A DNA stretch of 64,000 nucleotides from the NCBI GenBank assembly GCA_964247055.1, contig OZ176052.1:7440001-7504000 (forward strand), in the 5' to 3' direction. The position numbers and the translations under genes were made by a program. Below are positions 8,692-64,000 of this stretch, one piece after another. The notes beneath the pieces are model-generated. The model had not been told where the DNA came from. It did not search any database and worked only from the letters and a program-made list of their open reading frames with translations. The stretch comes from Paragordius varius. Lineage: Eukaryota > Animalia > Nematomorpha. Positions within the stretch are counted from its first letter, which is position 1; the number at the start of each line of letters is the position of its first letter.

Positions 8692-10312
8692 TGCATACTT
8701 TTGCAAATTTTGCATTTATATTAAATATGCTCGTGTCTATAATACGCATTTATATCATTGATAATCTCAAATTTTTATTAAAATCTGTATAAATATCATA
8801 CAATCCTCATTTAATGTGCAATTTTTATATGAAAGAACTTCCACATTCATTTATTAAATACAATTTTAACTAGATTTTTAATTAAGGCTGTGTTACCAAA
8901 ATATTGATCATTAGTTATAGTCCTTATAATGATACTATTGTAAAAAGTGATATAAATAAATTATTAATTAATAATTTCGTAACTATTCTATCTGATATAT
9001 TATAAATAAATATTTGCAGATTGAGTTGTAAAATTTAAAAGTTTTTAAATGCTTTAGGAACAAAACTCTATAAGAAGATTGCATCTATATTAAACTTTAC
9101 CCCGGATTTATTGATTTTTTTGGCCACGCAGATTTTTATGTGTATTTAGCATTTTCAATGCGTTGAATGCAATAGATGAAATTTTAATCAGAGTTTTGAT
9201 TTGTTAGGCATATTTCAAATGAGTACCAAATTTATTGTTAAAATTTACGTTTCATATTATTTTTACAAGTGAGCTTACATGGAAAATCGTTATCCTCAAA
9301 CGGTCAAATGATTTTAATAAATTCTGGGATCTTATGACTTCACTTTAAAAAAATGGCCAACCTTTTATTAAAATGTGAGATGTTAACTTTATAGGATGAA
9401 AGGCTAATATTTTTGAATTCTGGGTTTAGGAAAAACTTTTTAATAAAATGGCTAACAAAATTTCCAAGACTACGATTCTTAATAAAATCAACCTTCTTTG
9501 CTTGGCATCTTCATAAGCACCATACTTATTTCAAGGTAAAGTTTGATGAAGGTCGGTGGTATACGTAAAAGGGCCGAAGGATAGATGGATGGAAAATAAT
9601 CGAACTTATCTATCGATAAAATCTAAAACTATAGGCATCACGATGATTAACTTCTGATACAATAATCCATGTTTATGATTATTTGGTCGTTTAAATTTAG
9701 GAAAAAACTTACTCAATTTTTAAAAAACTTCTATAAGCAATAATATGGCTCTTATCGTATTTAAATATGATATCCACTGGAACCCTAAAATTAATTCTAG
9801 AACAGTTTTAGAGAATATGTTTATTATGTTATGGGCTAATTTTTATATAATATAAGCTAACACTGTATTAACGCTAAACAAATTATATATTAAAAATCAA
9901 TTATTTCTCAGGGATTAGGACCAAAAATGTTTTTTTGCCTATTGGTTCCACATATTTTTTAAAAAATATCGACTGACGGCTACGTTTATAATTTTATAAA
10001 AAAACTTTGTTTCCGGTTCATCTTTTGTTTAAGTAAACGTTTCTTATTTTGTTACAGTAGTAAATTTGTTTTATGTTAAAACATTCTTAAAGAATAGGTT
10101 AATGCTCGTATTATTGCAAAAAAATTTTAAATTTATTAAGGATTTTTTGATGCTGTCAAAAAGGATTGGGTAAATTAAAATTAATGCTTTATCACTGTAA
10201 AAGTTAAATTAAAATGAATTGAGGATTTTTTAATACAGTAAAAATATGTTAGGTTAAAATTAATAATATTGAAGATGGCCATGTGTAAAGATATAATAAA
10301 ATCTAAAAAATG

Positions 10313-10384
10313 TGCGTTAGCCGGGACTCGAACCCGGATCTGCTGCTTGGAAGGCAGCAATGCTAACCCTTATACCACTAACGC
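10313..10384 (-). tRNA. tRNA-Gly(TCC)
   Basis: Reverse complement GCGTTAGTGGTATAAGGGTTAGCATTGCTGCCTTCCAAGCAGCAGATCCGGGTTCGAGTCCCGGCTAACGCA: 7-bp acceptor stem, anticodon arm GCTGC-CTTCCAA-GCAGC, T-loop GTTCGAG. Confidence 0.97.
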
Positions 10385-10408
10385 TTGGTAAACAGGGAAG
10401 AATAATCT

Positions 10409-10418
10409 TATATAAAAG
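10409..10418 (-). promoter_or_regulatory. TATA-like element about 25-34 bp upstream of the tRNA gene
   Basis: TATATAA-type sequence at the distance typical of Pol III upstream TATA elements; common by chance in AT-rich DNA. Confidence 0.35.
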
Positions 10419-19747: not shown

Positions 19748-22700
19748 TCAATTTTCACGATGTATAAGTACAAAAAGCCCGAGTACTCCCAATAACATAT
19801 ACTAGTAAATGAATAAAATAATGCAATTAACTTTAATTTGGGGATAATCATTCATCCATATAGTAACCATACCAATGTAAGGGGCAAATCTGTAAAATAA
19901 TTAGGATAAAAAATAATTTAAGTGGTTGTTAATATAATTTAAAACATTTTATCTTATCTATATTTAAATAGTGTGACGCATAATATACATATACTAGCCG
20001 ACAAATTTTATATTCATCGAGCTAAAATCAAACAATGAACCTAAAAATTGTTATGACCACAACACAAGTTTAATGATATTCATCAAATTAAACTTAGGTA
20101 TGAAGAAAAAAATATAAAATAAACCCTTTAGCCCTCCCAATAACATCTTTATCTGTTAACCAAAGTTGACCAGGAGCGTATAATCCCCGATCATCAACTT
20201 GATTATTGTCGCCTTTTGTTAAAAATTTGATTGTGCCATTAGATCTAAAAAGGGAGAATAAAAAGTTTATAAATAAGTTTGAAACTTTTCATGAACTTTA
20301 ATGCATCGATGTACAATTGGAATCTCTCGTCCCTCAATCCGAAATACTGTTATATCGCCCACACGGATGGGTTTCCCTTTGTCATGCGTTAAAAACAATA
20401 AATCTCCGCGGTGAAATGCTGGCTCCATTGAACCACTATGTATGAAATAATTATAAAACAAAAAATAATGCTAGTTACTGTTCATAAAGCATAATATTTG
20501 TAGGGAATGTAAATAATCAGTATGGTTGCTTATTTCACACTATAGTTGGGCAATTAGCAACACAGTAGTGGTTGGAAAAAAGAAAGGAAAAATTGTTTAT
20601 TCAACATTTTGTTGCTTTTTCCATACACTACTGCAGTGGTACTCACCAAAATTATTTGACGGGTCAAATAAAATATACATTTTTTTCGAGGGCCAAAATC
20701 TTATCATGGCAAATATTCCATAGCTATTTGACACATATGCACATATGCACATATTTATACTCTAAATCAGCACAATTAATTTTTTGCGGATCGCATGTAA
20801 ATCCAACTAAAAACTCATTTTGCACCATTTAGTTTAAAAAATTAAATATTTTGATAACAACATTTATTTTGATATTAACCAATAATTTTTGACAAATTTG
20901 GTTTCGCCTCATGATAATCTTAATACGTCGTTCATATGATTATCGGTTAAGCGATTTCTGTATCCATTCTTGAAATACCTTATTTTTGAATATGCTGTCC
21001 ACGGGTAACTTGAGAAAAAACAGTTAGGATAACTTGAGCACATTTTTTTATATTTTCATATTTATTTGGCACATCTTGCCAAAACCATACATATCTTTCT
21101 TCTCTTCGATACTCCTTATATATATAGCCTCCGAATCGGAATCATTTTTAAAATCTACGAATTCTTCAATGATATGCGCCTCAAAACCGAGATGCTCAAG
21201 TTGCTTAATCTTGGATATATCCATATACCATGGATTTTCCACGAGTTTTAAGCAATTTTTAATATTTCTTAGTTTTTCAAATCTGAATTTCATTTCATTA
21301 GATAAAAATGCTAAATGATTGTCTATTTTAATTGTTGGAAAATATAGGAGTGTTTTATATAAATTCTTGTTTATATATTATTAATTTTTCTTCAAAAGCA
21401 AATATTTGATTAGCAAATTGGGTTATTACTTTGCTCCCTTGAAAACTTGTATTAAGACTAAGTCTATAAGTAAATGTCGCAAAGGTATGCAATAAAACCC
21501 ACCATTGGTCACTATTAATTTCCTTGTCAAACTTACTGTTATCTTTTATAAATAATACAATCTCATGTCTTAAAACAAAAAATCTATTTAATACTTTGCT
21601 AAGGCTTAGCCATCTCACAGCGGTGTACAAAAGAATATCATCAAACTCACTGTGGATATCTTTCAGAAGGTTTAGAATTTACGGCTATTAAATTCTCCCG
21701 GATGTGATTAACTATATCCACAACCGTTTTAATTACTGAATTGAGTGATTCATCTTTTACAAGGGAAACCAAGTTTTGCTATTGAGTAAATATTTTTCAA
21801 ATTATATTTGTTTTTCAAAAGAAGGATAAATCCTTCGTTTCATGAGGGACAGCCATCTGTGCAGATCGAAACCAATTTTTTCCATAGATATACCATTATT
21901 ATCGAAAAAAGTGCTACCACTTATTAGACATTCTTTTATTAGTTGGGAATCAGTAAACGGTTTCATGTTTTTTCCTAAAATATAACAAATTTCATACGAA
22001 GCTAATGTTACAACTTTTCCTGGGAGAAAGCTATAAAAATAATAGATTTTCTTTCTGGTACTGAATTTTTTATTTATTTGTTTCTTTCCTCATGATTTTC
22101 TGGTAATTTATGAGAATGATGGATTGAAAAATGTCTTTCAATATTGTATTTTTTATAATTATGTTGTCCTTGCATATAAGGCATGTATCAACATTTTTTA
22201 AAAACGACAAAGAATTTTTCTTCCAATTCCTTTTTAAAGAGCGATTTTTATCGGATAATTTACGATTTTTAGCATTAGATGTCATCCTTTGAATTTATAT
22301 TATGTAAATTTTTGCAAAAAATAAGAATATAATTTGAATTATGCTATAAAAAATAAATGATGTTGATTTGAAAAATATTTTATGGGAGTTATAAAAAATG
22401 ATGTAGGATCGCTATGAAAAGAATATGCATATGCAAGTTTGGGTGAAAAGCTTGCTTAAATACAAAAAAAGGAATTCAATAAAAATTTAAAAATAGAAAA
22501 AAAAATAGAATATAGAAACAGAGACAACGTGTGCCAAAATTTTGAAATCATTTTATGTAGGGAAATTTTTCTACCAAATTGGATAAAAAATAGAAATGAA
22601 ATAGATCTAAAGAAAATAAATTAATATTAAAATAAGCGAAAATTCGTTTATGTGTATTTTAAAAATTCATCAATAAAAAAAATAAATTAATTATCAATAT

Positions 22701-24045: not shown

Positions 24046-26955
24046 ATGGATAAGTTTACAAATTTTGAAATAGGTATAATTTTTTAAAATATCAGCAATC
24101 GTTGGCAGTGGTATCGGCGGATCTAGCTTGGCACATTTTTTGGATGTGGAACTCACTGGAGCAAATATTGATATATATGAAATGGCAACCACATTCGGGG
24201 GTCGTGTTCAAGCTATAAATATGCATGATAGATTATATGATTGTGGGGCGTCTATTATACATCCGTCGAATAAATATTTGGTAGAATTTAGAAAAAAATA
24301 TGGTTTTTCTAATTTTTTATAAAAGGTCTTAAGAAAAGAAAGTCATATTCAGGTTTCGGTCCATCAATATACAATGGCGTATCCGTTTCGAATGGATTTT
24401 TGTTCAAAACATTTCTTAGAATTGATAAATTAATTTCGTTTGTGCAAACTTTACGCTTCATCATTGCATGCGGTGTTATAGACTTTATTAAACTATATTG
24501 GGCTCTTCAAAAAATAATTAAAAAATTTACTAGGTATAGTATGTGATATTATTAATTTTCCTAATTAAAATTTTTAGATATTTTTCAGTTTTAAATTTTG
24601 TTAAGGGTAAAGTGACTATTTATTTTTTAGCCAATAACAGGTATTATTAACATCGGACCGGGCGCTGCTGGTTAGGGACTTTTAGACTAAAAATACGAGA
24701 TTATGTTATCAATTGTTTTATATTTTAAATATCCGTTACATATTTTGTAAAAATATGAAATGATTTGTTCATTTTATTTTTGACTATGTGTGATCGAGAA
24801 AAAAACGGTTTTAAAAACCAAAAAACATTAATGATATAGATTTCATCTTAAATATTATCTGTTTATATATTATTTATTCCCGATATTACGCTAAACCTAT
24901 AAACAATGTCTATTTTAAGAATATACACTCTTCAAGGTCAAGACTATGACTACAAAACCATTGAAGATTTATTGAAGCAAATTCAGTTATATGAATTAAC
25001 TCAAATCACGCTCCATTATTACGTAACAAAATGTTTGCATTTATCTCCAAAGATATATGAAATATTGATTGTTCCCGCCTTACGTGTTAATTATGGACAA
25101 GATCCAAAGAAGGTTCCAGCTTTTGTTGGTAATTAAATTCATTTTTTAACATTTTTGATAAAAAAAATAGTTTATTCTAATTAAATAATTTTTTAGCTTA
25201 ATGATTTATTTATTTTTACATCCTAAATTAGGGTTTTTTATTTTTGTTCCAATATTGGAGTATATACAAACTAATTATTTTTTACAATATTTGTAATATA
25301 AAATAATGTTTTTTAATATTTATACCAATGTTAAAATAAAACGAATTTTTATTGCCAACATCTCTAAACCGATTAAATCGCATTTAAACCTGTCTCTTTG
25401 CGTAAATTTAAATAAATGATTAATTATTTGAACCACATCGGTATATATTTTTATTCTCTGATTTTACAATTATTTGTAGGCTCGTATTTAAAAATAATTG
25501 AAAAATTCTATAAGTATAAATATTTCTTAGGCCTCATCTCATTAGCCGCTATGGGAGCGAATCTTTGGAGTTTCGAAGGTGGCAACCGCATAGTAATAGC
25601 CGCTTTGCTGAAATCATTAAACGTGAAAGTCGGGGAATATGAATCGTATTTTGAATCATCTAAATTCCGTAAACATTTGCACACAAAAAATATGGTAACT
25701 TTGCGTTTAAATGCTCAAGTGGAAAGGGTTGAATACGATGAAAGCACTAATAAATATCAGTTGACTTATGTTGAAAGCGAAAAGTATTATATGTATATCT
25801 TTTTATTAAAGGGGAAATTTTTATTACCCTGGTTTAAGACATTTTAAGCCCATGTATTTAATATCATATATTAATACTCATTTATTCAATATTAGATTAG
25901 TGAAAACCTATGATATGGTTTTCATAGCTACCCCAATGAAATTACAAAAAGTTCATATACCTTTTAAAAACAGCTGGTTTATAGATTTAAAAAGTTCCAA
26001 AGATGAGAATACACAGTATCATAAACTTTGGGTAAATTTCCTAGAAAAATGTGATTTTACTTTAAATGCCCACACTTTCGGAACCAGCAATGTCATAGGC
26101 AAAAATTATTTATATCCCTATTTATCGACCAAGAAAAATATATATTTGGATTCTATCCTAACCAGTCCGATTGGTAAAATTTATAATTCCAACGATATAT
26201 AAGATTTTTATAGTAAATTTAACTTTTATAAAAAAATGGATATCCAAATATATTTATTTTGATCACAGCACACGAAAATTTTAGGTTAATATTTTTTACA
26301 CAAAATAAACCTGACATTTGACGTTTTCACAATGGATATTTAATTTTTTAATTTTTTAAATTAATTTTCTACGGTATATCTTAACGCACATTATATAATT
26401 AAAACAGATGAATCATTCGCTGAACAATGGAATTCAGCTTCTCACATAATGCCTGTGGATTATAAAGCTAAAATTAATAAAATGACAAGAATGTGGATGC
26501 ATCTGAAAGCACGATTCTCGCCTTCCAATTTAAATTATGCACCATTATTGGATCGGACATATGATACGGAAATTACGGATCAAAAATTAGGTTGTTGGAA
26601 AATATTTTCTAATAAAGAAATTTCCGAACAAACTTTAACTCAAAAATTGTTTGAACAAAAAATGGTTGGGAACGAATGCAAATTAGCGAGGAAAGAAATT
26701 ATTTGGCATGCGTACCCTGATTATAAAACACTTTGGAATGATCCATCTACATTGCTAAATCATTCCTCATCAAATGGAGAAATAAAATATTCGTTTCCAC
26801 CCATAATTTGGCATCAAAATGCAATGGGTGGTGGAGTGTATCATTTGAATTCAATAGAATGGTTAGCTTCGACCATGGAAACTAGCTGTATATCAGCTAA
26901 AAATTGTTCCCTTTTAGCCCTCAAACATTATAAAATATGTAGTAAAATGAAATAA
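24046..26955 (+). CDS. PCYOX1: Prenylcysteine oxidase / prenylcysteine lyase
   Basis: Exons 24046-24073, 24096-24302, 24326-24533, 24920-25128, 25531-25783, 25896-26173, 26408-26955. FAD-binding IAIVGSGIGG, GGRV, GASIIHPSN, VNYGQ, LWSFEGGN, WHAYP, IEWLASTMETSCISAKN. Exon 1 is the least certain. Confidence 0.9.
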
Positions 26956-26982: not shown

Positions 26983-27579
26983 TCATAAAATATCGTTGTG
27001 TTGGGGTTTTACCATATCAAACAATCGGGGATCCTTTAAATATTGTGGTAATTTATAGTTGAATGGGAGAAAACCTAAAATAAATATATTTATTAATAAT
27101 TGAAAAAAAAAGATTTATCGTTTCCAATATAATTTTTATTTATATAGTTTATATTGGATATCCAATCAAATAATGAAATAACAAATCTGTTCATTAAGCA
27201 TGGCCATAAAATTATTTGAATCATGATAATAAAAAACGCATCGATAATTTTTTAAAATATATTTTACATACAAAATTTTTGGGCCATTCTTATAGCTTTT
27301 GAAACTTGCGCTTGTTGATAGGCGCATAATCCTGTATATTTTTGACCATAGATTCTTCCTGTGAATGGAGACAAAAATTGGCTAATTAATCGTACATTCT
27401 GAATTTTAAAGAAAAAAAACTTTATATGACACTGTAATGTTGTTTTTGCATAAAAAGCATTCTAAGGGTTTTTGTTCATATGGATCAGGAAGGATTGTAG
27501 AAACCGAAGGTGCTTTTAAGTTTATATGGCGAAAAACGTGATTATTATTGAATTTAATAAGCATCTGTTTGCGTACCAT
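26983..27579 (-). CDS. MRPS18C: Mitochondrial ribosomal protein S18c
   Basis: Exons 27579-27421, 27398-27272, 27074-26983: [51 protein letters not shown]. Confidence 0.88.
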
Positions 27580-27689
27580 TAGTAAAAACAGATGTATTTT
27601 TTTAATAAATTTATTTTCAAAATAGACCAATTGTAATAACTAATATTAAATTTTAGTAAAAATATAAAAAAATTCACGCTGTTTGTAAA

Positions 27690-29580
27690 TTTATAGTTGC
27701 TTTGCGCAAAATCTTGGGCATTGAAAACATCCCAATGAAATATATCTATATATTTATAAAAATGGAAAGTGATGACTTTCTGAATTGTTTCCGGAATACC
27801 GGTAGACCCATTCAAATCCAAATGTCGAATAAATACAATCATTAATGAATGCTCCGACAATAGCTTTGCTTTTTTTGAATTAGGCCCCCAGTTCGGGTTC
27901 ACCCCGTGTAAACGGGTTTTTTGAAAACACAAGTCCACAAAAATCGTGTCTTTGAGACAATTTTCTGGAAAACATGTTGGACAATTCGATTTCAAATATG
28001 ATTTATTTTTACTTATTTTCGATTGCGCCGAATATAGTCGGCTCGCTATTTTAATTTAGGCCCTCTTTCCGCTCCCCCCGTAAAATGTTATTTTTTTAAA
28101 AAAACTTAGTCCACAAAAATAATTTCTAAATTTATGTATCCACCTAGGTATAAGATCGTAAAAACTCAATGAGGATTCCATGTTTCCTGTTAAAAAGCAA
28201 AATTAATCATGCGTTTTTTTAATATTGGCTGCTGGGTAAGGAGATACCCGTTAAAAACTGCTCCGGCATACCGAAATAGCGTGTCTTTGAGGGTAAATTT
28301 TAGAAAACCTATCGGGCCATATGAGTTCAATAGGTGCTTAAAATTACCTGTAAAGCAAATATTTAGGTCGTGTATTTTAAATTAGCGAATTAGGCCCTTA
28401 ACGACCTGAAAAATGCGCCACCATAGAATGATTTTTTAGTTTTATGACAATTTTTTCAAAATTAATGAGGGCATATGGAATCAATCATGATTCCAGGTAT
28501 TCTCCGTAAAATGGCAAAAAAATGCGCTTTTTTGTATCAGTTTCTGGGTAGGGAGCTACCCCTAAAACTGCGCCACCATTTTGAGATTGTTTTGTTTAAT
28601 TTTCAGTAAACTTATCAGGCCACACAAGTTTAATAAGGGCCTGAAATATTACCCGTAAAAAGGCAAATTTAAGTCGATATGTTTTTTTAAATTAGCCGTT
28701 AATTAGGCCATTTACGTCCTAAAAATGAGCTATCATTGAAATATTATTTAGTTTTGAAGCCATTCTTCCAAAAACTATTAAGAACATAAGGAATGATTAA
28801 TGATTCCAGGTATTCCCCCATAAAGGCAAAATTTTTTATCGAACGTCTTTTATATTGGCCTCTATGTAGGGGGGCTAACCCCCTATGCTGCACCACAATA
28901 TCGATACAGCGTGACTTTGGAGGCAAATTTAGTATCAGGCGATATAAGTTCACTAAGGGCTTGAAATATTTCCTGTAAAAAGGCAAATATTTTAGTAGAG
29001 CGGTTCCCTTTAATTAGGATCTTGCCCTAAAAATGCGCCACAATAGAAGACTTTTTGGTTTTGATGCAATTTTTCGAAAATCCCACAAGAGCATATTATC
29101 AATCATGATTCCAGGCATTACCCGAATTAAGACAAAAATATTGATCGAGCGTTTTTTGTTTTGCCCCTGGTTAGGGGGCTACCCGCGTAAAACTGCACCT
29201 TCCCCTCGGTTAGAAGCTACTCGCCAAAAACTGCGCCTTTATATAGAAATTGCGTTGTTTTGGAGCTAATTTACAAAAAATTTATGAAGCCATACGAGCT
29301 CATTAAAAACTTGAAGTATTACCCGTAACTACGTAAAAATATCAGGCGTTTTTTATTAGCTTTTAATTTGGGGCTTATATGCCCTAAATATACGCCATTA
29401 TATAACGATTATTTAGTGTTGAGATATTTTTTAGAATAACCCATGAGTAGATGGTATCAAATTCCAAATAATTGTCCTATAAAGGCAAAATATTTAACTT
29501 AGCGCTTTTTCCATAATGGGTAGGGGAGACGCCATACAAAAATGGCGTGGTTTTGGAGCTAATTTTTAAAAACTTAAGAA
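27690..29580. repeat. Degenerate tandem array, about six units of ~310 bp
   Basis: Recurring motifs ATGATTCCAGG(T/C)ATT, GGGG(G)CTACCC and AAAACTGCGCC near 27840, 28170, 28485, 28800, 29105 and 29460. Confidence 0.7.
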
Positions 29581-51751: not shown

Positions 51752-53508
51752 ATGATATATCATGGTAAACAATTATTCTCTACTAGTATTCGGTATCAAC
51801 AGCCATTTTTGTGGATTAATTATTTGAGTCATTTCATAATGTTCACTTGTCTATTCAATACAATTTTTACCACTGTTAATATTGATGGGGTAAAATCATT
51901 AAAAAACGGTGATTCGAACACCAAACAACTTAACACTGAACTCAAAGTATTGAAATCTCCTACATCAGAAAAATATACGGGACCAACGAAAGATAGAAAA
52001 TTTACCCCTGTTACCACGTATTACATTAAAGGTACAACAATGTCAACTGAAAAACATCAACAAATTTTACCCACAACACCCATTTTATCTACACGCAAAT
52101 CTGACACTAATTATTTCAAAAATGTAACTTCACATTCGCAAAAAATGGATTATCCCATAAGCGTTGCCACAGCAGCGTCCGAAGATATGAGCTCCGATGA
52201 ACAATTTGCATTTAGACCCATAGCTCTACATATTCCGCCCTCATTTATACGCCTTTCGGCCCCGCTAAAGTATTTCCGTATTGTGGTAGGTTATGGTTCA
52301 AAATATTACACGGCAAACATGGCCAATGCGAAGAGAGGTGGAGGTGATAAAAATTTTAATCCACCAATCATCAATATAGGACTCCTTTTACCCCAAAATT
52401 GTAAATATCAATCGTGTTTGTCAAAAATTGCGCCGGCCATGCGAATAGCCTTCCGTCGATCTAAGGTAGAATCCCTGCTGACTGGTTACACAATAATTAT
52501 AATACAGGGTGATAGTAATTGCAGTAATGTTGAGGGACCAATCGTTGCTATGCGTATGTGTTGGTTCGAAAAAGTTTCCATAATCTTTGGGCCAGTTTGT
52601 GATTTTGTCGTAGAAACTATCTCAATACTCACTAGTCGATTTTTTAATATTCCTCTCATTACGGCTGGCGCTTTACGTCCCGAATTTGGTAAGGATAAAC
52701 GCTTGGCTGATTCCGCATACCCGTTATTGACTAGGGTAGGTGCTTCGCTAAATTCAATCTACCCATTCTTCCACAAATTTTTTAGGTATTTTATACTGTT
52801 ACGACAATTTTTAATAATATTTGAATACCAATGTTTTATTAAATATGATAACGTTTTAACTTTTAAAGGTGTTGTTTAGGCAAATGTTACCACCGTCTTT
52901 TATGTGTTTTGACTTCTAAAATGACTTAAAACGGGTTACCAATAAGTTAATTCTGTTAAGCATTAAATTAATTCCTCCACTATTTTTATTATCCTTACAT
53001 TAAATTTTAAGTGAAAATATAACAACTATCATAAATCCATAGTTAAATTGATAAAATTTAAATTTTTTAATATATTAAGTTTCGATATTAAAATCAACCC
53101 AATTCTAGATTATCATGTGGATCCATCATATTTTTTATTTTATCTCATATCTCAAAAAACGGTTCAATTACTTTTTTAGACAAAACAAATGGAAAAAGTT
53201 TTATCTTCTTTATGAAGTTGATAGTCACCCCCAAGTAGTATCTCACTTTTGTTTCCATGTCGCTGTAAGCATGAAGAAAGCATCGAATGATTCCAATTAC
53301 AAATACTTTACCGAATATCAAAAATATAGCAATGCTTCATATGCTTCGTATCAACAAGGATTTTCAAACACTCAGCCCGTGAACGCATCACTAAATTCGA
53401 CAAGTAACTCATATTTTATGGATCTCAATAGCGGTGATATTGATCAGATGAAAAAACAAAACAAAACCTATTCCGACATCCTAAGGAACATTGGGAAAGA
53501 CAATTCAA
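51752..53508 (+). CDS. Receptor guanylyl cyclase variable cassette V1 (signal region, Thr/Ser-rich stalk, N-half of the ANF-receptor ligand-binding domain)
   Basis: Exons 51752-52785 and 53180-53508. Motifs INIGLLLP, GDSNCS, IFGPVCD, NIPLITAGA, YPLLTRVG, WKKFYLLYE..SHPQV..FC. Ends NIGKDNS-A|GTTTGT (phase 1). Confidence 0.8.
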
Positions 53509-54021
53509 GTTTGTCAATTTATTTTAAATTCATTTATAATTGCAGTATTTACATTTGTAATGAGTTCATACATAAATTAAATTTTAGAAGTTTTTATACC
53601 TATTTTTTTGAAAATAAATTAAAGCGCAGGGGAATATGCATAAAAGTATGTACTAATATTAGATGATAATCACAATGCCCATAGGGCATACCTTTTGTTT
53701 ATATATTTTATGTATATTTTTTATTTTGTAAAATAATAATAATAATAAAATTACTGGCGAAAACCAAATTACAAATGGGAAAATATTACCTGACCCCTTT
53801 TCATTTGTTGTAATTGAAAAAAAAAGTATAAATACAATAAATTTTGTTTTATTTTTTTTTAAACCTTTTTTTAAACTTTTTTATTTTTATTAAACATGCA
53901 TGCAAAATTTTTTTACTTTCACATAATGTAATTCACATTATCTATCACCATTTCTTACCTTTTTTTTTAATTTAATTTACTTTTAAACATTACATGATAT
54001 GAAATTTATTTTTGCATTTAA

Positions 54022-55786
54022 ATGTTCATTTTTTTAATAAACATTTCATTGGCATACGTTATCCCACTTCTATGTGAGGGGAAGGCTAATTTTAGTAATG
54101 TGCCTTCACCAACAAACAGACATTCTTTTTTACACCTTTCCAATTCTGGGGAAACTAATCAAAGCATAATCAAATTTTATAAACATATGATAATCCCTTA
54201 TGACGAAGAACATTATAGGTATGAACATCTCCCATGGTGGAACGATGCCATTATGTCGTCCCACAATAATTCGATTAAATCATCGTGGGAATTGTTGGAA
54301 GAAGCTTTAAATTCAGGACAGACCTCAAACTATTTCTCAAAGATTCATAGACGAAGCAAAGCCCGGCTGGTCCCAACATATCCTATGGCAAATTTGTCCA
54401 TATTTTCACGAGGCAAAGAACAAAGAATGACAACAACTAGCAACAATTTAATGAACGATGTCAACAATATTACCGCAATAAAGAATAGCAGCGAAACATC
54501 AAATGAGGCAAAACAATCGTTAATAAACGGTAGTAAATTTGTTACCATGGTCTCTGATACAATTAATCAGGATTATGAATCATTTGTTATTAATGAGCCA
54601 TTGAATGTAGCAGATCATGAAATGGAGTTTGATTTAGATGACATGGCAATAGGGGATGGGGGACATGCTTTAATGCCACAACCCACGAGTACTAGTCTTG
54701 CAGTTTTTTCTACCACGCCTCCTATAAATACCCTAACCTTTCATTTAAATGATACACTTGAGAGGTCAAAAATATCGCTAAATATTACTAGCCAGCCTTT
54801 AAGTTTTGACAAGCTTGTTTTAAACTCCACAGTTAATACAACTCGAATTATCCCCAATTCCAGTCTACCTATATTATCGAAAACCAATGTGCGGACAGTC
54901 CCATCGAAATCAATTAACACACCGATTTGGGATAAGGTATCAGATAAAGTAAATTTGTTGGAATCGAATCCCACGTACCCACAAACGATAAATTGGGGTC
55001 TTCTCCTAAACAATGACAGTAAAAGTCTTTCATCGCTTTCACGTATAGCTCCAGCCATTCAAGTTGCCCTGAAAAGGCAACAGGTAAAATCTTTACTAAC
55101 GATGCCAATGAGAATCGCCAATGTTTCTGAATTAAATTACTCTCTTAACTTGGCGAGCACAGGAATTGTGCAACGAATCCCTGAAACATTTAAGATAGTA
55201 GTCAAAGAAGGCGATTCCAAATGTTCCCACATATATGGTTTAACTGAGGCCATACGATTAGTTCTTAACGAAAATGCCAGTGTCCTCTTTGGACCAGTGT
55301 GTGATTTAGCTGCCGCAAAATTTGCTCGGCTGACCGGTCGCTTATTTAACATACCAATGATCAGTGCAGGTACGTTAACTCACGATTTTGGAAAACCTAA
55401 AACGTTGCCAGATTCGGAGTTTCCTTTGTTAACACGCGTGGGACCATCCTTTAATTCCATGTCACGGGCCCTGATCGACATTATTTTACATTTGGATTGG
55501 CATAAAATTGTTATCTTGCATGACCCAAACAGTCACCCCGAAGTCATGGATAAATTTTGTCATTATGGGGCCGCTGGTGTCCTAAACGAGATGCTTAAAC
55601 GAAATGCAGCTTTAACTAACAGTACTAATAACTTTACTGGTCTATACGATCGGGATGGCGAGGAAGAAATTATTATGAGGAATAAAAAATTCCGTTATCA
55701 ATCCCCTAAGGATTTGTCAGGCCCTCTATCTGGTCGGATGAGTTGGCGTGATTTTATGCTAGAAAATATTGGGAATGAGTATTCAA
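54022..55786 (+). CDS. Receptor guanylyl cyclase variable cassette V2
   Basis: Single exon. Signal peptide MFIFLINISLAYVIPLLCEG, ~320-aa Ser/Thr/Asn-rich extension, then INWGLLL, GDSKCS, LFGPVCD, NIPMISAG, FPLLTRVG, WHKIVILHD..SHPEV..FC. Ends ENIGNEYS-A|GTAACA (phase 1). Confidence 0.82.
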
Positions 55787-56500
55787 GTAACAGAAAATAT
55801 ATATAATATATGTAATTGAGTTAATTTAACATTTTATTCTGTTTTTTTTATACTTAGAAAGGGGGATATTTACAATTTGTTTGCACAGGTTTAACAATAT
55901 GTAAAAACTAAACAAACGGAGTTTTAGGTAAACACGGTAGATATATACATAAAAAATATTTAATCTTAGATCAATTCCTTTAATATTCCATTCACATTAT
56001 GTATGATTAATGGTATAGTTTTTCATTCAATTTTTTTGCGCGATATACATAATAGTATATAAACATACATTCTTTATTTACCATTTATTTGTTTTATATT
56101 CGTTTGCAGGTATGCATGCATTTATTTTTACTTTAATTTAGATGCGATTGTAATTGCATCTATCTTTTCATCAATATATTTGTTTATTAATGTTATAACA
56201 TTAACTATATAGTTTTACCCAATGAAAAAAAAATCGTTCGTTATTTGATCGTTACTTGCATATATTTTTTGTTATTGAAAATGTATGTATATGATATGTT
56301 TATAAATAAGTTATCAACGCTTTTTAGTTTAAAGTGTTTGTTTTACCATTTGCACATAGCGCTTGAAAAATGACTTTTTTGCAAACAAAGAAGTTGCATT
56401 TAAATAAATTTCAAAATAATTTTTTCTATTGGGCAACAGCTTGTACAAAAGACATTTATATGTCCCATATAATTCTGTATGACAGTTCTCCAAAATATTG

Positions 56501-57440
56501 ATGATTTTTATTCGAATTCATGGTAAATATTTATTATACTGGATGTTCTTGCCCATTTTACTCTCATACAACAATTATTCTGCCCAGAAACAGAGTATTG
56601 AAAAAGCAGTAAATAATATAACATTAAGCAAAAAGTTGTATGATTTGCAGACATCATTAAGCAACACAAATATATCCGTACCATTCCGGATTCCCAATAA
56701 TAAAAATCTCACACAAATTACACCGATTTATATAGCTGTGATTGCTCCTGATGATACAATATCGTCCACATCATTAAATGTATCCAAGCACATTAACGAC
56801 ACAACTGATCTCAGTCCTCATAGGGAATACCTATTCAGTCGTAAATGGATTCTACCAGCCATAGCATTAGCCTTATCCAAAACCCAATCCCAATATAAAT
56901 TGGCTCAACTACCCTATAAATTTGTACTGCGGTTCAGAGATGGGAAATGTTCAGCAACATATGGCCCTTTAGCCGCCATCGAGTTTTATCGAGAGAAGCG
57001 GGCCGATGTTTTTTTCGGTCCTGTTTGCAGTTATGCCGCTGCAGTCGTTGGTCGGTTTTCCCCTTTCTGGAATATTCCGCTAATAACTCCAGGTGCTATG
57101 GTAGATCACATGGCTGATAAAAAAGAGTATCGTCTGCTAACACGTATGAATGGAAGTTACCGAAATTTGGCTGATTTTTTTGTGGCTCTCCTAAAATACT
57201 TTGATTGGTCAACCATAGCTATGTTGTACAATGATAATTTGGATAGGAAACATCTGGGCAAGTCAGATTGTAGTTTTGAAGCGGAAGCAATTTACATACG
57301 CTTTATGGAAACATTCTCTGACAAATTTACCAATGGATCTAGTCGTCCCACCTTTGAAGCTTTTGAAGAAAGGCCCATAAATTTTCACATAATTCGAAAA
57401 TTCGATCAATGGCTCAAGGATGTATCCAAAAAAACGAGAA
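56501..57440 (+). CDS. Receptor guanylyl cyclase variable cassette V3
   Basis: Single exon. Hydrophobic leader LLYWMFLPILLSY, then IYIAVIAP, RDGKCS, FFGPVCSYAAAVVGRFSPFWNIPLITPGA, LLTRMNGSY, YFDW. Ends VSKKTR-A|GTTGAG (phase 1). Confidence 0.88.
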
Positions 57441-57872
57441 GTTGAGCTATTTGATTTGCATATATATTACATTTTAAATAATTCTTGTTTGATATGATTG
57501 GTTCTAAATATATAATCATCCCTATGTTTGTTGTATGATATTTTTTATCGTTTGGTTAACTAAACATCTATATGGCTATACAAATAAAATATTATCATAT
57601 GATTATAGAAATTAAGTTTGAGCATAAGGTTCATGAAATTTTTAGAGCTAAGATGTTTTCATATCCCAGAAAACGTTAATTTGAACATCTTTTATATTTA
57701 ATACAATAATAGGCCACTATATTTTTACGATTACTTTTTAAATTTTATAATCTACTGTATTTGCGACAATTATTTGTGAAAATTTTTTCGTCACACTGGT
57801 ATCCACAATTGTTTATTTAGCATTTTTGTGATTTGAATATTTTTTCAGTACCATTATGTGTTTATTGTAGAC

Positions 57873-58088
57873 CAGGGGTGTCCAACACAAATGACTCGCA
57901 TTCTAATCATACATGAGCATTAATAAATATTTTATAATTCTCAAACATCAACTGTTAAAAGCAAACACAATATAACAATTTATCTTAGTTCGTTGTCAAT
58001 TGGATAAACTTATTCTAAAATAAGAGTTGCATATTTTTGGAAATTACGAATTCCCAAATTTTTCGCCGGCCGCGTGTGGCCACCTCTG
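57873..58088. mobile_element. hAT-type MITE remnant (CAGGGGTGTCC family)
   Basis: Left end CAGGGGTGTCCAACACAAATG as at 15904; degenerate right end GGCCACCTCTG. Confidence 0.6.
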
Positions 58089-58681
58089 ATGTAGCAAATA
58101 AAAACTCTTATTAGAGTCGGTATTTTGAGTTTGATCGAATTTCCCTTCTTTATGAAAACCGTTTCGTAAAGAAGTTTTATTGCGTCAAAAAATTGTCTAT
58201 ACCGGTACTGATTCCATTGCCTGGTCAAATTTCTGATATCGGTCTTTAATTTCTGATGGCCTAATATACAATGTGAATAAATACCCATAAATTTAATCAG
58301 AAAAATCTTAGTATTGTATTTTTCCCCAAAGTATGTAAAAAACAATAGTAAAAACTAAGGTTAACATTGTATTGAAAATTTTTTTTGGAATTGCGGTTCA
58401 GGTTTTAAACTCTCATTTTTACATTTTTGAAAATATATGATTTCATATTGGTTATCCATAGCTTTGTTTATAATCTTGAAACTATTTTAAATCCATTGCT
58501 TTTTATGTACCAATTATTTAATTTAAATTCTTTGTTAGTATCAGTTATCGCGACACTGGTTAAATCGCAATATTTATGATGTTTTATTACTCACAAAATA
58601 TAATTATATAAGAATATTATAATTTTACTTATGAATAAATTAATGATGTTAGCATTCTATGAATTCTCATTAATTTTTTAG

Positions 58682-61600
58682 TTATCATTCTGTGCGCATC
58701 TCAAAGCAGCGTGCGAAAAATATTGCTCACAGCCTATGATCTCAACATGATCCAAAGTGGTGAATATGTCTTCTTTAACATCGAATTATTCAACAAGTAA
58801 AAATAATTTGTAATTTTTTGATTATAATAAATTTTACTAGCAAACGATTTCGCCTAATTTTAGGTATAGATAACATTTGTTATCAATAGCCATATCAAAA
58901 ATTATTTTAGGTTTTATTTGACGTTAAACCAGTCGATTCAAACATTTGTCGCATAATATTTATCCAACTATTTTTTCCCTTACCTTATAAAATATTAGGG
59001 TCGCTATTTACTATATTATCTCAAAATATGTTTTAGCCATCTCTAATGTTCGCCTTAATATGTAATTTTTAAAAATTCACGTTCTGAGCAATCCATTTTC
59101 CTTGTGTTTAAATGTCGTCACACTTGCTAATTTCCATATTCGAAAAAAATATTGTGCGGACAAACCGGATGTATATGTATATACCCCTTATTTTTCTTCA
59201 TGTTTGTCACCCTAAATGTTAGATTTCTTCCAATCAAAATAGCCCTTATTATAATTAATGAGTTTGAATAACTTAATATTACTTAAAAATAATTAAAATG
59301 TCCTCATTTATCAAACACCAATTTTTTCTAAATGCCAATTTAAATATATAACGATTTTTACATTTACATTTATACGAGAAGGTTATAACCATTTTCATTT
59401 TCAATATTTTTTAATTTTGATAAATATTTAGAAAAATAGCAAAATATTGATAAAAAAATCAGCCTCATTGTCCAATTTTTATCTATAGTTTTTGGATAGA
59501 AATTTTGTTAAAAATACTTTTTATGACATGAGCTAAATTAAGGCGTTTGCATCTGACCATATTATTAATTATAGAACTAATATCATTGTTAAAAATTTCA
59601 TTGGGTATAAAATTACCATAAATACTTACCTTAAATAATTTTTGGAATTTCCACGGTTTTTTTAGCGGCGGTGATTATGGAATTATTATTTGTAAAAATA
59701 ATATTAATTTTGCCCTATATGTTTAGTTATAAAAAACCATAAAATTTTCGCCAAATGGATCCAAATTTTCTAAAAGAATCTAGTTTTGAATTCATTTTTC
59801 AATAAAGTTAGGAAAGGATCCTTTAAAACAGGGGTTGCCAACACGCGGCCCTCCAAAATATTTTTGCAGTCCGCGAGAAATTTTAAATACAAAAGTTTAC
59901 GAAATCCAAGTATAATTATTTTTTTAAACAAATTTTCTTTATAAAAATTTCGAAATTTGGCAATGAACAGCAAAAATGTTCAAATAAATATTAGTTTTTA
60001 CAATCTTTTTCAAAATGTCATAAAATTTTTGTAAATGCCCATCTATTTTGCGAACGCGGCCCATCGGATTTTTCGATCCAAAAATACGGCCCGCGAAGCC
60101 ATTTATGTTAGACACCCCTGCTTTAAAATATTTATATAGGCTACTTGTCCATATAACATTTGTTGCCATTAATAACACTAGACAAAACATTTTAATTTTT
60201 TTAACTGCCATTCTTGTAAATTTAAAATTTATTTCATTAAAGTACATTATTAGTATATCTGAAAAGAAAATTGGTCTAGCATGCAGAATTTTTTTATATT
60301 AGAGTTTATCGATAATTTTTGGCCCCGATTTAACATTAAACTCGAAATTTCGAAAATTAAAAGTTTTAGATATTCGAAAGAGCGCAAACTGCATCTTTTA
60401 AAATTTAAATGGTAAGTCATTTAAATCAATCGGATGTAAAAGTTATTTGGATTTAAATGGTCGAAATTTTCAATCCAATAAGTCAAGAATTTTCACAGAC
60501 AAACTAATTTGAAAATCATATAAATTATTTTAATATAATAATTAGGGTTATATAAGTTTTTAATTTAAAAAAAATATTTGAAAAAGCTTTTGGTTTGCTT
60601 TTTTAATAAAAATTATTATTATCATAAATATTTTACCTAGTGGATACTAAAATGCATAGCTATAACTGTAAATTTATTACATAATGGCTATAAAAGATCA
60701 AAAATACCTTAAACTTTGTTTTTATATTTAAAATTTCGAAAATATCAGCCTCGTAAGAAAATAAATTAATATTGATGAGATGGTAATTTTTAAAAAACAA
60801 AAAACTTAAAAATGGCTGTTTAGAGTGACATAAAAGCAATAAAAAATGTTTTAATCAAAAAAACTTTCTTGTGTTATTTTTTTTGGACATTCATCACCAT
60901 CTAAACAAAGTTTGAGCTATTTTCATCCATTTGTTTGAAAGACATAATTAAAAAAAATGCTCTCGCTTCGCGCGTTTGTCGCTCTTTGTGTCCAATATTA
61001 ACTGTCGATGTAATACATATTAGTATGTATTTTATAGAGTTTTTATTACTCTTTCGAATAATATATTACAAATGGGCATTACATGTATATTTTCAAAGAA
61101 AAACATTTTTTAGTAAAATTTTGATAAAGAGGGCGCATAATCAAAAAAATCAAATTATACAAAATTCTTCCATCGAGTTATAATTTTTATTTCAGATTTA
61201 CTGTTAAAATGATACTAAACATCAGAAAATGCAAAAAACTCGAGTGGCAGAAAAATTTGTTGTCCAGTGTAACATAAGACCGTATATTCGTTTTAATATT
61301 TTCAATGATAATTCATCGGACTAAAGCTATTTTTTAACGTAAATTTTAGACGAATACCATTCTTTAAATCTGATAAGTATAATGCCACTAAATAATTTAG
61401 GCCTGATGGTAAAAATCCAATTTGGCAAAGTGACAAGGATACAGCCGAACAAAATGCTAAAGCCAAATTAGCTTATGAAGCTTTATTCACGCTTACTATG
61501 CGTATGCCTGACAATGAAGAATACAAAAAATTTTCGGACCAAGTTAAAGAAATCTCAAAGCGCGTTTACGGTTTTGATTATGGAACCGAAAATGTTAGTA

Positions 61601-64000
61601 GATCTTTATTGAATTTTATGTCATGTATAATAATGGCAAATTAACTTAAATTATGATTTAAAATGTTATTTTGGTAAAGCGTGCAATATTTGTAATATCA
61701 ACAAGGTTGAATATTTTTTAAAGATATCTTTCTATACTAATACTCTAAAAATGATGATGATATTAAGGTTGTTATAGATATAAAAATTCAGATGTTAATA
61801 TATAAATAGAATTAATTTATCTTTACGGATATAGGTGAATGCATTTGTAAGCGCTTTCCACGACGCCGTCATTCTCTATGCTTTGGCACTGAATGAAACC
61901 TTGCAAGCAGGTTTTAACTATACCGATGGTGTAGAAATTACAAGAAGAATGTGGAACCGCACTTTTACAGGTAATAATGCCAAACATGATTTATTTAGCA
62001 ACAGACATATAAGTTGCTTCATTGCACAGTCATCTTTTAAACTTTATTAGTCAATCAATTTATTAGTAAGTTATTTATTCTACTGTGTAAGTGCATTCAT
62101 TATAAAATATGAATTTTTATAATTGGTATTTATATGTTTTTGAATTTAAATTTAGGGATTACGGGGAATGTTAGTATAGATGCTAATGGTGATAGGTATA
62201 CGGATTACTCCTTGTGGGACCTAAATCCGGTTACGGGGCGTTTTCAAGTATATTTTATTGTAAATTTAAAATTATAACAAAACCTAAATGTAAAAAAATG
62301 TAAGAAAATAATGCAACCTTATGTTAATGCTTAAAGACCGTAATTAATTTTCGAAACGGTTAAAACCAATCAAGATAAAAAATTTTGCCATATGCATTAG
62401 TATATGTACCATAAATATTTATATGTTCCATATTAGGTAGTGTTAAATTATTATGGGAAAGATAATTCTTTGGTTGAAGTGCCCAACAAAACTATTCATT
62501 GGGCCGGAGGTCGGACTTCCGCTCCTTTAGATCAACCCGTTTGTGGATTCGATGGTAGCTTATGCAAGAAAAAGGGTAATCCATATTATATTTTTTATTA
62601 TCCTTTTTTTTGAAAAAGTTTAAACGAATCTATTTTTCGTTTTAAAACAGAATTTCCCAAATACGCCATTATTATCACATTTTTGGGATCACTCGTTTTC
62701 ATTCTCATGATCCTATCATTATTCATATATCGCCGGTACCGGATAGAATCGGAATTGGGTAATATGAAATGGCGCATAGATTGGGATGATTTGATGTTCC
62801 AAAATTTCTTGCAGCCCAAGGATAACAAAAAGTTTGGGAGTAATTGGAGTCTCAATCGATTAGGGTTGGATGATACTAAAAGTAAAAAGTCACGTTTACG
62901 TGGTAATATTCCTCACAAAAAACGATCTCATCGTTTGCACGGGTATCTGAAAGGAACACCTTCAAATCATTTATATTCCCCGAGTGGTCCATTAACCCAT
63001 CATCTCTCTTTCGCATCAACTAAATGTTTGAGTCCTGTTCAAGGAGTTAACACCGAAGATGAAATGGAAAATAACCGTTTAGGTCTTGTCGGCGCAGTCG
63101 TCAAAAAGGGTAGGGAGGAGCGACTTAAAAAACGTTCGCTGGAATATTCTTCGGATACGGCTCTGAGTGAAAGTATGTTTAATGATGACAGTGGTGATAG
63201 CAATAGCTCATCAACACAAATGAAAGTTCACAAAAACAGTGATTCACACGAACAACAGGATCCACTTCTCTCTTTTTACCGAAGGCGTTATTCTCAACCC
63301 CCTAACCATCATCAACAACAAGGACAAAATCATCATTTTAGTTTAACTAATGCTTTGCATCGCGGATCTAATTTTTTCCACTTACACGATAGTTCAGCCC
63401 ATGCAACAGTTAATTCAACATTCAATGATGTTGAACCCAAAAAGAAAAAATCCAGCATGAGGAATCGACTTTTGTCAAGTATGACATCATTTATTTTTTT
63501 AAAATCATTATTTAACTTAAAAAAATCTTTATGAATGTTGTTAGTGTTAATATTTATAATTTTTTTGAAGTTTAAGATTTGTTTATGTCCAACAAAAAAC
63601 TACATAAAAGCAAGTTTCGCTGTGTTTTATATATAATACTTTTTGATTAACTGCACTTCGAGCCAAATCAACTACTGTAGACCTATTATGTCAAAGATGT
63701 ATTATATAATAATCGATATTTTACACAATAAATATATGGTATTAGAAATTGATCCACAATATTACAATCGGTACAGTAAGATATCTAAATTATCAAAAAT
63801 AACGAGCGAAGAATTGGAAAAATTGCATAGGCATCATCATCAAAGCCACAAGAAGAGTTCAGATTCAACCTGGTATGCAGGTTTGACCTCGTTTTAGTTT
63901 TTAACCCATAGATTTAGCAAGGAATTGGGAATGGATTACATCCGTTCGTATTGCATACTACAAAAGTGTCCCTGTTATCTTAAAACCGGTTGTTATGAAA
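58682..64000 (+). CDS. Receptor guanylyl cyclase (natriuretic-peptide-receptor type) constant region, continuing past the window
   Basis: Exons 58682-58796 ([18 protein letters not shown]), 61401-61593, 61835-61970 ([19 protein letters not shown]), 62156-62247 ([14 protein letters not shown]), 62437-62575 (P.CGFDGS.C), 62651-63478 (TM, WRIDW), 63746-63880, 63912->64000 (IAYYK, start of the kinase-homology domain). The cyclase domain itself is not in the window. Confidence 0.9.
59829..60120. mobile_element. hAT-type MITE (CAGGGG family)
   Basis: CAGGGGTTGCCAAC / GACACCCCTG with perfect 8-bp TSD CTTTAAAA. Confidence 0.85.
60176..61269 (-). mobile_element. Non-autonomous CACTA/EnSpm-like element, copy 2 (rGC intron)
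   Basis: TAA|CACTAGAC ... GTCCAGTG|TAA; inverted homolog of 45516-46623. Confidence 0.78.

Follow-up and report, generated by a model that had tools for sequence, protein, structure and literature searches.

The window analyzed here, a stretch of 64,000 nucleotides from the very AT-rich genome of the nematomorph Paragordius varius, contains an array of three intact, tandem paralogous first exons (V1, V2, and V3) upstream of one receptor body (Table 1). Each of these cassettes has its own ATG, a few codons past an in-frame stop, and its own hydrophobic leader, and all three match the Pfam ANF_receptor family (PF01094), in agreement with the first-pass annotation of this DNA, which had described them as separately initiated N-terminal parts of that domain. 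Their stop-free runs, of 594, 379, and 320 codons, are among the longest in the window, where the mean run is 14 codons. Each cassette covers approximately residues 1 to 215 of NPR-A in the ANF-receptor fold, and V3 aligned with the rat NPR-A ectodomain over residues 16 to 179 (E = 9e-21). Pairwise divergence among the cassettes is about 60%, with the fold motifs and cysteines all kept. Spacers of 513 and 714 nt separate the cassettes, and tblastn searches with the cassettes found no fourth copy.

Table 1. Positions of the cassettes and constant exons within the window (a slash marks the splice junction)
Feature	Position	Strand	Evidence and description
V1 exon a	51752..52785	+	ORF, Pfam ANF_receptor match, splice model; class X in trees
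V1 intron	52786..53179	+	394 nt, GT..AG, phase 2
V1 exon b	53180..53508	+	Splice model; terminal phase-1 donor CAA/GTTTGT
V2	54022..55786	+	ORF, Pfam; single exon, 588 codons + 1 nt, class-X N-lobe
V3	56501..57440	+	ORF, Pfam; single exon, 313 codons + 1 nt, leader, class-Y N-lobe
Constant exon 2	58682..58796	+	Only phase-1 acceptor exon
Constant exon 3	61401..61593	+	tblastn with Limulus receptor, 50% identity; splice model
Constant exon 4	61835..61970	+	63% identity to Trichinella receptor guanylyl cyclase; splice model
Constant exon 5	62156..62247	+	Trichinella comparison, splice model
Constant exon 6	62437..62575	+	Ectodomain end, Cys pair CGFDGSLC
Constant exon 7	62651..63531	+	TM helix, juxtamembrane motif; 63531 is a provisional 3' limit

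V1 had been drawn as one uninterrupted segment; this had to be revised, since an intron divides it within an Arg codon (..FFR/QNKWKK), while the limits given earlier for the three cassettes and for exon 2 all held. Exon a of V1 encodes the leader (residues ~20 to 42), an N-terminal extension of about 200 amino acids, and the initial portion of a class-X ANF-receptor N-lobe, and the two spliced exons amount to 454 codons. V2 begins with the signal peptide MFIFLINISLAYVIPLLC and has a longer extension (about 320 amino acids) with many N-glycosylation sequons, and the V3 N-lobe is nearest to the Trichinella and insect Y type. The donors of V2 (CAA/GTAACA) and V3 (GAA/GTTGAG) are, like that of V1, in phase 1; a single codon base precedes the GT in all three, and alignment confirmed that this codon is homologous among the cassettes.

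The shared receptor body

The acceptor of exon 2, TTTTTTAG/TT, fills out the codon that the cassettes leave split. The earlier proposal that this is the sole compatible phase-1 exon, with none between the cassettes, was borne out by a window-wide tblastn search with the exon-2 peptide, in which no second copy was found and the next-best match (E = 0.15) lay elsewhere. No alternative downstream exons for V1 or V2 were found within the window, and the same-phase donors there face a single set of constant exons. These exons complete the extracellular ANF_receptor domain and lead into a single transmembrane helix followed by a cyclase-type juxtamembrane motif, a segment that aligns to NPR-A residues 442 to 485 and to the Trichinella receptor. 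Exon by exon, the constant part is 41 to 63% identical to the latter; downstream of the juxtamembrane motif, exon 7 runs into a long low-complexity stretch. The window stops at position 64000, past the exon for the transmembrane and juxtamembrane segment, and the gene continues beyond it. Of the common transmembrane, kinase-homology, and cyclase module that had been postulated, the membrane helix and juxtamembrane motif were seen, and the kinase-homology and cyclase exons would lie outside the window. The closest named relatives (Trichinella, Tachypleus, and insects) all carry Pkinase and Guanylate_cyc domains, among them the reference Trichinella receptor, which has a single first exon with the same end point.

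The conserved ectodomain cysteines of NPR-A (C60-C86, C164-C213, and C423-C432) all have counterparts at the locus. Those of C60, C86, and C164 align in V3 and occupy homologous places in V1 and V2, and the translation of exon 2 places a cysteine within IIILCAS. We take this residue to be the equivalent of C213, the disulfide partner of C164 in the NPR-A literature, from which we likewise adopt the numbering and pairing of the exon 6 pair. With half of one bilobed fold encoded by the variable exon, both the disulfide and the fold would cross the junction between variable and constant parts.

Read through its donor, V2 meets a stop after 6 codons and V3 after 1, so a short stand-alone product is formally possible, and V1 and V2 might be translated alone, from unspliced or early polyadenylated transcripts, as secreted half-domains serving as decoys or binding proteins. 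We regard this as very unlikely: the donor at the homologous codon keeps its sequence and phase across all the cassettes and in other phyla, the cassettes of relatives are joined to a body, the C164-equivalent cysteine would be without a partner, and half of a bilobed fold would represent no known stable unit.

Maintenance of the array in other individuals

DNA contigs from other samples (runs X1, X3, and X5) cover the introns and spacers evenly, and one contig from run X3 spans positions 54886 to 57649, from inside V2 through the spacer and into V3. Because the array is bridged by the DNA of other individuals, it is not an assembly artifact, and that explanation was discarded. The V1 intron is rich in differences between individuals. 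As a separate observation, V2 has diverged at its synonymous sites to an unexpectedly high degree relative to the adjoining spacer.

V2 differs from its counterpart in run X3, another individual, by 23 synonymous and 6 nonsynonymous changes (pN/pS 0.07; binomial p = 8e-11), with a ratio of 19:2 in the domain part, and is under strong purifying selection within the species. For V1, the comparison covered exon b, in which 2 of 329 nt differ against 18 of 358 in the flanks (Fisher p = 4e-4), an approximately ninefold lower variability that shows selection on V1 in part. The low pN/pS of V2 and the depletion of differences in V1 exon b imply that both are live coding exons; among the differences listed for V3, three are synonymous and one is nonsynonymous.

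These data bear on the idea that V3 is the sole working first exon, next to two partial duplicates, V1 and V2, that have lost or are losing their function. Of the three cassettes, V3 most resembles the Trichinella receptor's single first exon, and the N-terminal extensions of V1 and V2 are long and poorly conserved, both of which fit such a history. Decay of V1 and V2, which the first-pass annotation had named as grounds for giving up its model, is disfavored by the constraint on V2 and the protection of V1 exon b relative to its flanks, by stop-free runs of 594 and 379 codons where the mean is 14, by the retention of fold motifs and cysteines at the observed divergence, and by the expression of class-X cassettes in insects (see below). 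A locus with V3 as its only functional head is thus highly improbable.

Two cassette classes and comparable arrays in other animals

Trees of the cassettes against receptor guanylyl cyclase ectodomains resolved two old classes, with the split between X and Y supported at 99/96. V1 and V2 group with cassettes from horseshoe crabs, the leafhopper X2 isoform, a termite, Lingula, and Batillaria in class X, and V3 groups with Trichinella and the insect Y cassettes in class Y; a single clade of V1, V2, and V3 was disfavored (AU p = 0.024). This placement ruled out that V1/V2 and V3 are recent copies of one another. By their position in the tree, classes X and Y are older than the separation of this worm from insects.

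A search for similar arrays in relatives, where the RefSeq isoforms are computed models, found the layout in horseshoe crab and insect genes. In Tachypleus tridentatus (XP_076324599-602), isoform X2 is predicted to combine cassette A with the body and isoforms X1, X3, and X4 to combine cassette B with it; the isoforms are identical at 838 of 838 positions from exon 2 on, and A, B, and exon 2 lie in tandem in the genome. Horseshoe crabs, including Limulus (XP_022238773.1), thus resemble the window in having tandem first exons: two cassettes, each opening with an ATG and a leader and closing in a phase-1 donor at the same codon, lie 3.5 to 4.3 kb apart, and a single exon 2 is located 7.7 to 10 kb downstream. 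They differ in cassette type: both are of class X, and the locus yielded no cassette of class Y. In insects, one class-X and one class-Y cassette share one body in the leafhopper Homalodisca vitripennis (XP_046686862.1 and XP_046686869.1) and in the wasp Diachasma alloeum (XP_015110011.1 and XP_015110012.1), under the RefSeq label "atrial natriuretic peptide receptor 1." The Homalodisca isoforms X1 (class Y) and X2 (class X) are identical at 50 of 183 positions before the boundary and at 872 of 872 after it. The genomic order in Diachasma (X, Y-a, Y-b, exon 2) follows the X-Y-body order of the window, and the phase-2 intron in the Arg codon of V1 matches intron 3 of the Diachasma X cassette in position and phase. 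Unlike those of the window, the insect cassettes contain a larger number of introns, with distances of tens of kilobases between them (about 690 kb for the whole Homalodisca gene), and only one is of class X. Uninterrupted termite-like cDNA contigs of 6.8 to 7.9 kb run from an X cassette straight into the body, and class-X cassettes are expressed in insects.

The earlier suggestion that this layout is new to the family stood in one respect, in that our literature search found no paper on tandem alternative first exons in receptor guanylyl cyclases; it failed in another, as the isoform annotation of arthropods in RefSeq already contains the layout, which is not peculiar to this genome.

Some models in relatives join cassettes in series. 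Those of Limulus (XP_022238773.1), Lingula (XP_013400522.1), and Branchiostoma (CAH1254748.1) are chained, and hymenopteran RefSeq isoforms link a complete X to the second Y exon, Y-b, and then to the body through two phase-1 introns, unlike our reading of the window, so that X cassettes are not always modeled as clean alternatives. By analogy, V1 or V2 might use a cryptic acceptor that lies within a cassette farther downstream, so that the product would have at least one and a half N-lobe segments. The Limulus, Lingula, and amphioxus models, however, have their entry point into the following cassette within its signal peptide or immediately behind it, and each of these cassettes has its own ATG and leader, so the chains look like artifacts of the predictor; the Limulus model wrongly chains its two cassettes, and for the same gene the more recent annotation, that of Tachypleus, presents clean alternatives. 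V2 and V3 each lack an internal intron, and therefore any known acceptor within them, and each has an in-frame stop closely upstream. A serially repeated half of a periplasmic-binding fold would also be unlikely to fold. Chained use is, in our judgment, unlikely.

Beyond the arthropods, vertebrate NPR-A (NPR1) and the Trichinella papuae receptor (KRZ71309.1) share with the window the ectodomain fold, cysteine pattern, juxtamembrane motif, and a large exon 1 with the same end position, and differ in having a single first exon without alternatives. The nearest formal parallels are UGT1A and the clustered protocadherins, in which paralogous first exons likewise stand in tandem and serve one downstream exon set, every one of them with a start codon of its own and a donor as its sole splice site, and in which the variable part likewise faces the ligand or substrate. 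The window departs from them in having only three cassettes, in the variable exon encoding about half of a bilobed fold rather than a whole domain, and in its two cassette classes that would predate the separation of this worm from insects.

A receptor gene with probable alternative heads

Our reading, to which we assign a probability of roughly three in four and for which all the indirect tests speak, is that the window contains the 5' half of a gene for an NPR-type receptor guanylyl cyclase, with three alternative first exons and one body. From each cassette would come a start codon, a leader for secretion, and the initial ~215 residues of the bilobed fold that binds the hormone, among them the GPVC chloride/disulfide motif and the greater part of the membrane-distal lobe. 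Transcription would most likely start separately before each cassette, the cap-proximal donor would be spliced to the sole acceptor at 58682, and any downstream cassettes would be discarded as intron. V2, V3, and the transmembrane exon had no match in any RNA run of this species, and the junctions are predicted from the sequence. The three products would be unlike one another in the ectodomain half that faces the ligand and the dimer, and so perhaps in ligand specificity. They would have in common the remaining ectodomain, the membrane helix, and, from exons expected outside the window, the kinase-homology and cyclase parts. One gene can thus probably make three receptors with different hormone-binding halves; that heterodimerization adds further variety is pure speculation.

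The same products could arise from one promoter upstream of V1 and a long precursor, with cassette choice left to RNA processing, for instance through internal spliced-leader trans-splicing before V2 or V3. The spacers are short, no promoter was recognized in these AT-rich sequences upstream of the cassettes, and no shared upstream element was found there beyond short matches that may be due to chance; the V2-V3 spacer also varies less than the synonymous sites of V2, which would fit any regulatory role. We are aware of no evidence that this group of animals uses trans-splicing. One promoter per variable first exon is established for the protocadherins and UGT1A, the well-studied genes of this design (PMC1885805), and it is by this precedent that we infer it for the window and hold a single promoter to be quite unlikely.

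The cassette array is real and probably of ancient origin. The X-Y-body arrangement would have been inherited in common with insects rather than assembled locally, and the X cassette would have been duplicated additionally in this worm. We lean slightly toward the view that X and Y first exons in the fixed order X-Y-body predate the separation of this worm's lineage from the insects and thus go back to the base of Ecdysozoa. If so, for over half a billion years one gene would have been the source of two hormone receptors with different tuning, with later gains (two X cassettes here and in horseshoe crabs) and the loss of one class in Trichinella. The arrays of amphioxus, with four cassettes, and of Lingula suggest that the design recurs across animals and is routinely misannotated as chained.

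Receptor guanylyl cyclases are usually treated as one gene, one receptor, and one ligand family, and many of those in invertebrates are orphans or have disputed ligands. The comparison flags a systematic annotation error, in which Limulus, Lingula, amphioxus, and a spider are assigned impossible proteins made of chained cassettes, and across phyla it offers a concrete, testable system because arthropods have the tools for testing it. If one gene gives two or three ligand-binding heads, then knockouts, expression maps, and deorphanization assays built on a single cDNA may miss half of its biology, and cell-specific promoter choice would be a means of readdressing the same cGMP output to different hormones.

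Three first coding exons and one receptor body

Between 51.7 and 57.5 kb, the plus strand holds three of the window's five longest stop-free runs (594, 379, and 320 codons, the mean over the six frames of the window being 14), and all three runs match Pfam ANF_receptor. The cassettes found there, V1 to V3, are tandem paralogous first coding exons with about 40% mutual identity. In every one the ATG lies a few codons past an in-frame stop, a hydrophobic leader is present, and the 3' end consists of a single codon base followed by GT, and the three ends fall at homologous codons when the cassettes are aligned. Open reading frames, Pfam, and alignment thus bear out the first-pass annotation, which had described three paralogous segments, each with its own ATG, leader, and donor at a homologous codon. 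Its extents hold for V2 and V3 as single exons; V1, which it had drawn as one exon, is interrupted by an internal intron. A tblastn search of the window with the cassettes found no fourth copy. In the rat NPR-A ectodomain, V3 aligns with residues 16-179 (E 9e-21), including cysteines equivalent to C60, C86 (FGPVC motif), and C164, and the same three cysteines recur in V1 and V2 along with the motifs FGPVC, NIPLI(T/S), and LLTR. In V1 (51752-52360) and V2 (54022-54980), N-terminal extensions of 200-320 residues precede the receptor fold; that of V2 carries 13 N-glycosylation sequons and is under looser constraint, with 4 synonymous and 4 nonsynonymous differences from run X3, another sample under the same species label.

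Features of the window and of two comparison loci
Locus	Feature	Position	Strand	Remark
Window	DSCAM-like gene	1-6200	+	3' part; Ig, four fn3, DSCAM C-terminal Fn3-like domain
Window	Prenylcysteine lyase-like gene	25416-26952	+	exons
Window	V1	51752-52785 (exon a), 53180-53508 (exon b)	+	394-nt GT..AG intron between, phase 2
Window	V2	54022-55786	+	exon model
Window	V3	56501-57440	+	exon model
Window	Constant exon 2	58682-58796		
Window	Constant exon 3	61401-61593	+	
Window	Constant exon 4	61835-61970	+	
Window	Constant exon 5	62156-62247	+	
Window	Constant exon 6	62437-62575	+	
Window	Constant exon 7	62651 onward	+	
Limulus	Cassette A	10001-10714		
Limulus	Cassette B	14277-14993		
Diachasma	Cassette X	3001-4524		four exons
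Diachasma	Cassette Y-a	19981-20370		
Diachasma	Cassette Y-b	27542-27940		
Diachasma	Exon 2	36632		

Just one exon is able to complete the split codon of the cassettes, and its acceptor is TTTTTTAG at 58681. That only one compatible exon follows had been claimed beforehand, and tblastn of the window with the exon-2 peptide found no second copy. Five further exons finish the ectodomain and add a membrane helix and a juxtamembrane motif alignable to NPR-A 442-485. The Trichinella papuae protein KRZ71309.1, with the domains ANF_receptor, Pkinase, and Guanylate_cyc, has one first exon that ends at the same point as the cassettes (..SAN|VILMCAS), and identity between the later exons of KRZ71309.1 and the constant exons of the window is 41-63%. 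By these domains, this exon boundary, and this level of identity, the gene whose 5' half lies in the window is a receptor guanylyl cyclase of the NPR type; its exons for the kinase-homology and cyclase domains lie beyond the window.

Elsewhere in the window, the DSCAM-like gene forms one 1341-codon open stretch that runs past the window start, and the longer ORFs in the ~23 kb from the prenylcysteine lyase-like gene to V1 gave no Pfam match.

Integrity of the array and selection on the cassettes

An assembly artefact, which the first-pass annotation had named as one of the outcomes that would overturn its reading, is rejected, since the array was recovered in contigs of sequencing runs X1, X3, and X5; a single X3 contig (54886-57649) starts within V2 and spans the spacer and the entire V3. 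Coverage in the three runs is even over exons, introns, and spacers, so they behave as genomic DNA. Run X5, labelled as a different organism (B), contains the locus from 52900 to 58850 at at least 99% identity and only 3-6x depth, as would fit a host sample with a parasite. A 42-nt stretch just past the V3 donor (57470-57511) is present in the window and X1 and missing from the X3 and X5 contigs, and is an intronic indel polymorphism. At 57875-58073, in the intron from V3 to exon 2, a nearly twofold rise in X1 depth and the ends of several contigs suggest a dispersed repeat; a search of the window for the suspected transposon found no clear second copy, with one weak match at 15966-16033.

At about 40% identity, synonymous sites between cassettes are saturated; selection was read from polymorphism. 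Between the window and run X3, V2 differs at 29 positions, 23 synonymous and 6 nonsynonymous, and with only 22% of its sites synonymous this corresponds to a pN/pS of 0.07 (binomial p 8e-11); the domain part alone has 19 synonymous and 2 nonsynonymous differences. For V1 the count covers exon b, in which 2 of 329 nt differ, versus 18 of 358 nt in the adjoining intron and spacer (Fisher p 4e-4). Differences in V3 and exon 2 are for the most part synonymous. The upstream cassettes are alive, V1 on the strength of exon b, and the decay that would have told against alternative first exons was not encountered in V2 or in V1 exon b. Within the V2 domain part, 54945-55443 carries 18 synonymous differences from X3 in ~500 nt (~0.10 per synonymous site). 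In the noncoding spacer at 55787-56500 the SNP rate is lower by a factor of about nine (8 in 714 nt). This excess could stem from long-balanced haplotypes, from gene conversion by an unseen paralogue, or from constraint on the spacer.

Cassette classes and comparable loci in other animals

In a tree of the cassette segment, cassettes fall into two N-lobe types with 99/96 support for the split, and the V1-V3 tree called for at the outset places V1 and V2 in class X and V3 in class Y. Class X also holds horseshoe-crab A and B, Lingula, Batillaria, Homalodisca isoform X2, and a termite-like cDNA; class Y holds Trichinella, Daphnia, Hymenoptera, Homalodisca isoform X1, sea slug, amphioxus, and fish. 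The last residues follow the classes, reading (V/I/M)Gxx(Y/F)x in X and SKxAR or similar in Y. A recent local triplication is rejected, because trees split V1 and V2 from V3 and forcing the three into one group lowers the log-likelihood by 29.6 units (AU p 0.024). Among named sequences, the Trichinella receptor lies closest to V3 in the trees. A profile-free protein search with V3 found no relative above 49% identity. The word-indexed protein search gave no match for V2 and only the self-match for an amphioxus cassette.

Several high-scoring V3 matches are annotated proteins with two to four cassette copies in series. The public models for Limulus, Lingula, Branchiostoma, and the spider Oedothorax string two to four cassettes together as a single protein, each junction falling within or just past the signal peptide of the cassette that follows, and are probably annotation errors. 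In Limulus, A and B each have an ATG and leader and end in phase-1 donors (FG|G GTAGGT or GTAAGT), and a lone exon 2 follows 10 kb further on. Entry into B in the gene model is at a site within B's own signal peptide, which has the look of a predictor artefact. In the newer RefSeq annotation of the Tachypleus orthologue, isoform X2 begins with A and isoforms X1, X3, and X4 with B, all being identical (838/838) from VILMCLSP on, and A, B, and exon 2 stand in tandem. The search of other genomes proposed by the first-pass annotation has therefore yielded comparable tandem cassettes with a shared body in Limulus and Tachypleus. Amphioxus has four tandem cassettes spaced 2.5-3 kb apart, each with an ATG and leader and ending ..ARG, and Lingula has two. 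For the arrays of Lingula, amphioxus, and the spider, a search of the 10-kb downstream flanks turned up no constant exons, so that a shared body is only putative there. The spider locus consists of nearly identical partial repeats, which may be an effect of assembly or of recent duplication.

In annotated isoforms and cDNA contigs of insects, both classes are joined to a body. In Homalodisca, the class-Y isoform X1 and the class-X isoform X2 share 50 of 183 residues (27%) before the boundary and 872 of 872 after it. Uninterrupted contigs of 6.8-7.9 kb that cluster with a termite protein join class X directly to the body, and a separate contig joins class Y to it. The genomic order in the wasp Diachasma (X, Y-a, Y-b, exon 2) matches the X, X, Y, body of the window. 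The V1 intron, phase 2 within an Arg codon (..FFR|QNKWKK), has its exact counterpart in place and phase in the third intron of the wasp X cassette (..MDR|YNWKK). The most parsimonious interpretation of these sequence comparisons is an X, Y, body order older than the worm-insect split, with a duplication of X in the worm lineage. A single body is compatible with the constant-part tree, where the termite-like class-X cDNA groups with hemipteran class-Y sequences (98/96). The deeper branches of that tree have poor resolution, and the horseshoe-crab body cannot be placed in it. Alternatively, the ancestor could have had two tandem genes, the upstream body being lost repeatedly. Hymenopteran RefSeq isoforms (Diachasma 3001-36751, Megachile, Odontomachus) run from a complete X through Y-b to the body, with two GPVC motifs per protein, both introns in phase 1, and Y-b beginning DAFLGPVC; such joins may be genuine transcripts or a product of gene modelling. 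As V2 and V3 have no internal intron, this X-to-Y-b path is not open in the window.

Proposed expression and significance of the layout

The cassette span corresponds to about residues 1-215 of NPR-A. In NPR-A structures this stretch makes up the opening segment of the membrane-distal lobe, where the chloride site and dimer helices lie, and much of the hormone pocket. The exon 2 cysteine is presumably the needed partner of the C164 equivalent, which argues that each cassette functions only as part of a body-joined product. In the mechanism that we infer for P. varius, transcription would start before each cassette and the first donor would be spliced to 58682; the equivalent junction is annotated or seen in cDNA in relatives. 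A search upstream of the cassettes found no shared promoter element, the short repeats there being within chance. In RNA runs labelled as this species, no words of V2 and V3 or of the transmembrane exon occurred, matches being confined to DNA-like runs, and one RNA run aligned to the locus gave nothing. The array itself is confirmed, and its reading as alternative first exons is supported by selection and by the homologous loci, though not yet by RNA in P. varius.

In the open-access literature we found no account of variable or alternative first exons in a guanylyl (guanylate) cyclase or natriuretic peptide receptor, and the layout goes unmentioned in the open-access work consulted on genes with variable first exons and on receptor cyclases of insects. 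RefSeq isoforms already imply it, yet as far as we found it is undescribed. A receptor cyclase gene probably now joins the variable-first-exon genes, with a layout that is likely to be both old and widespread.
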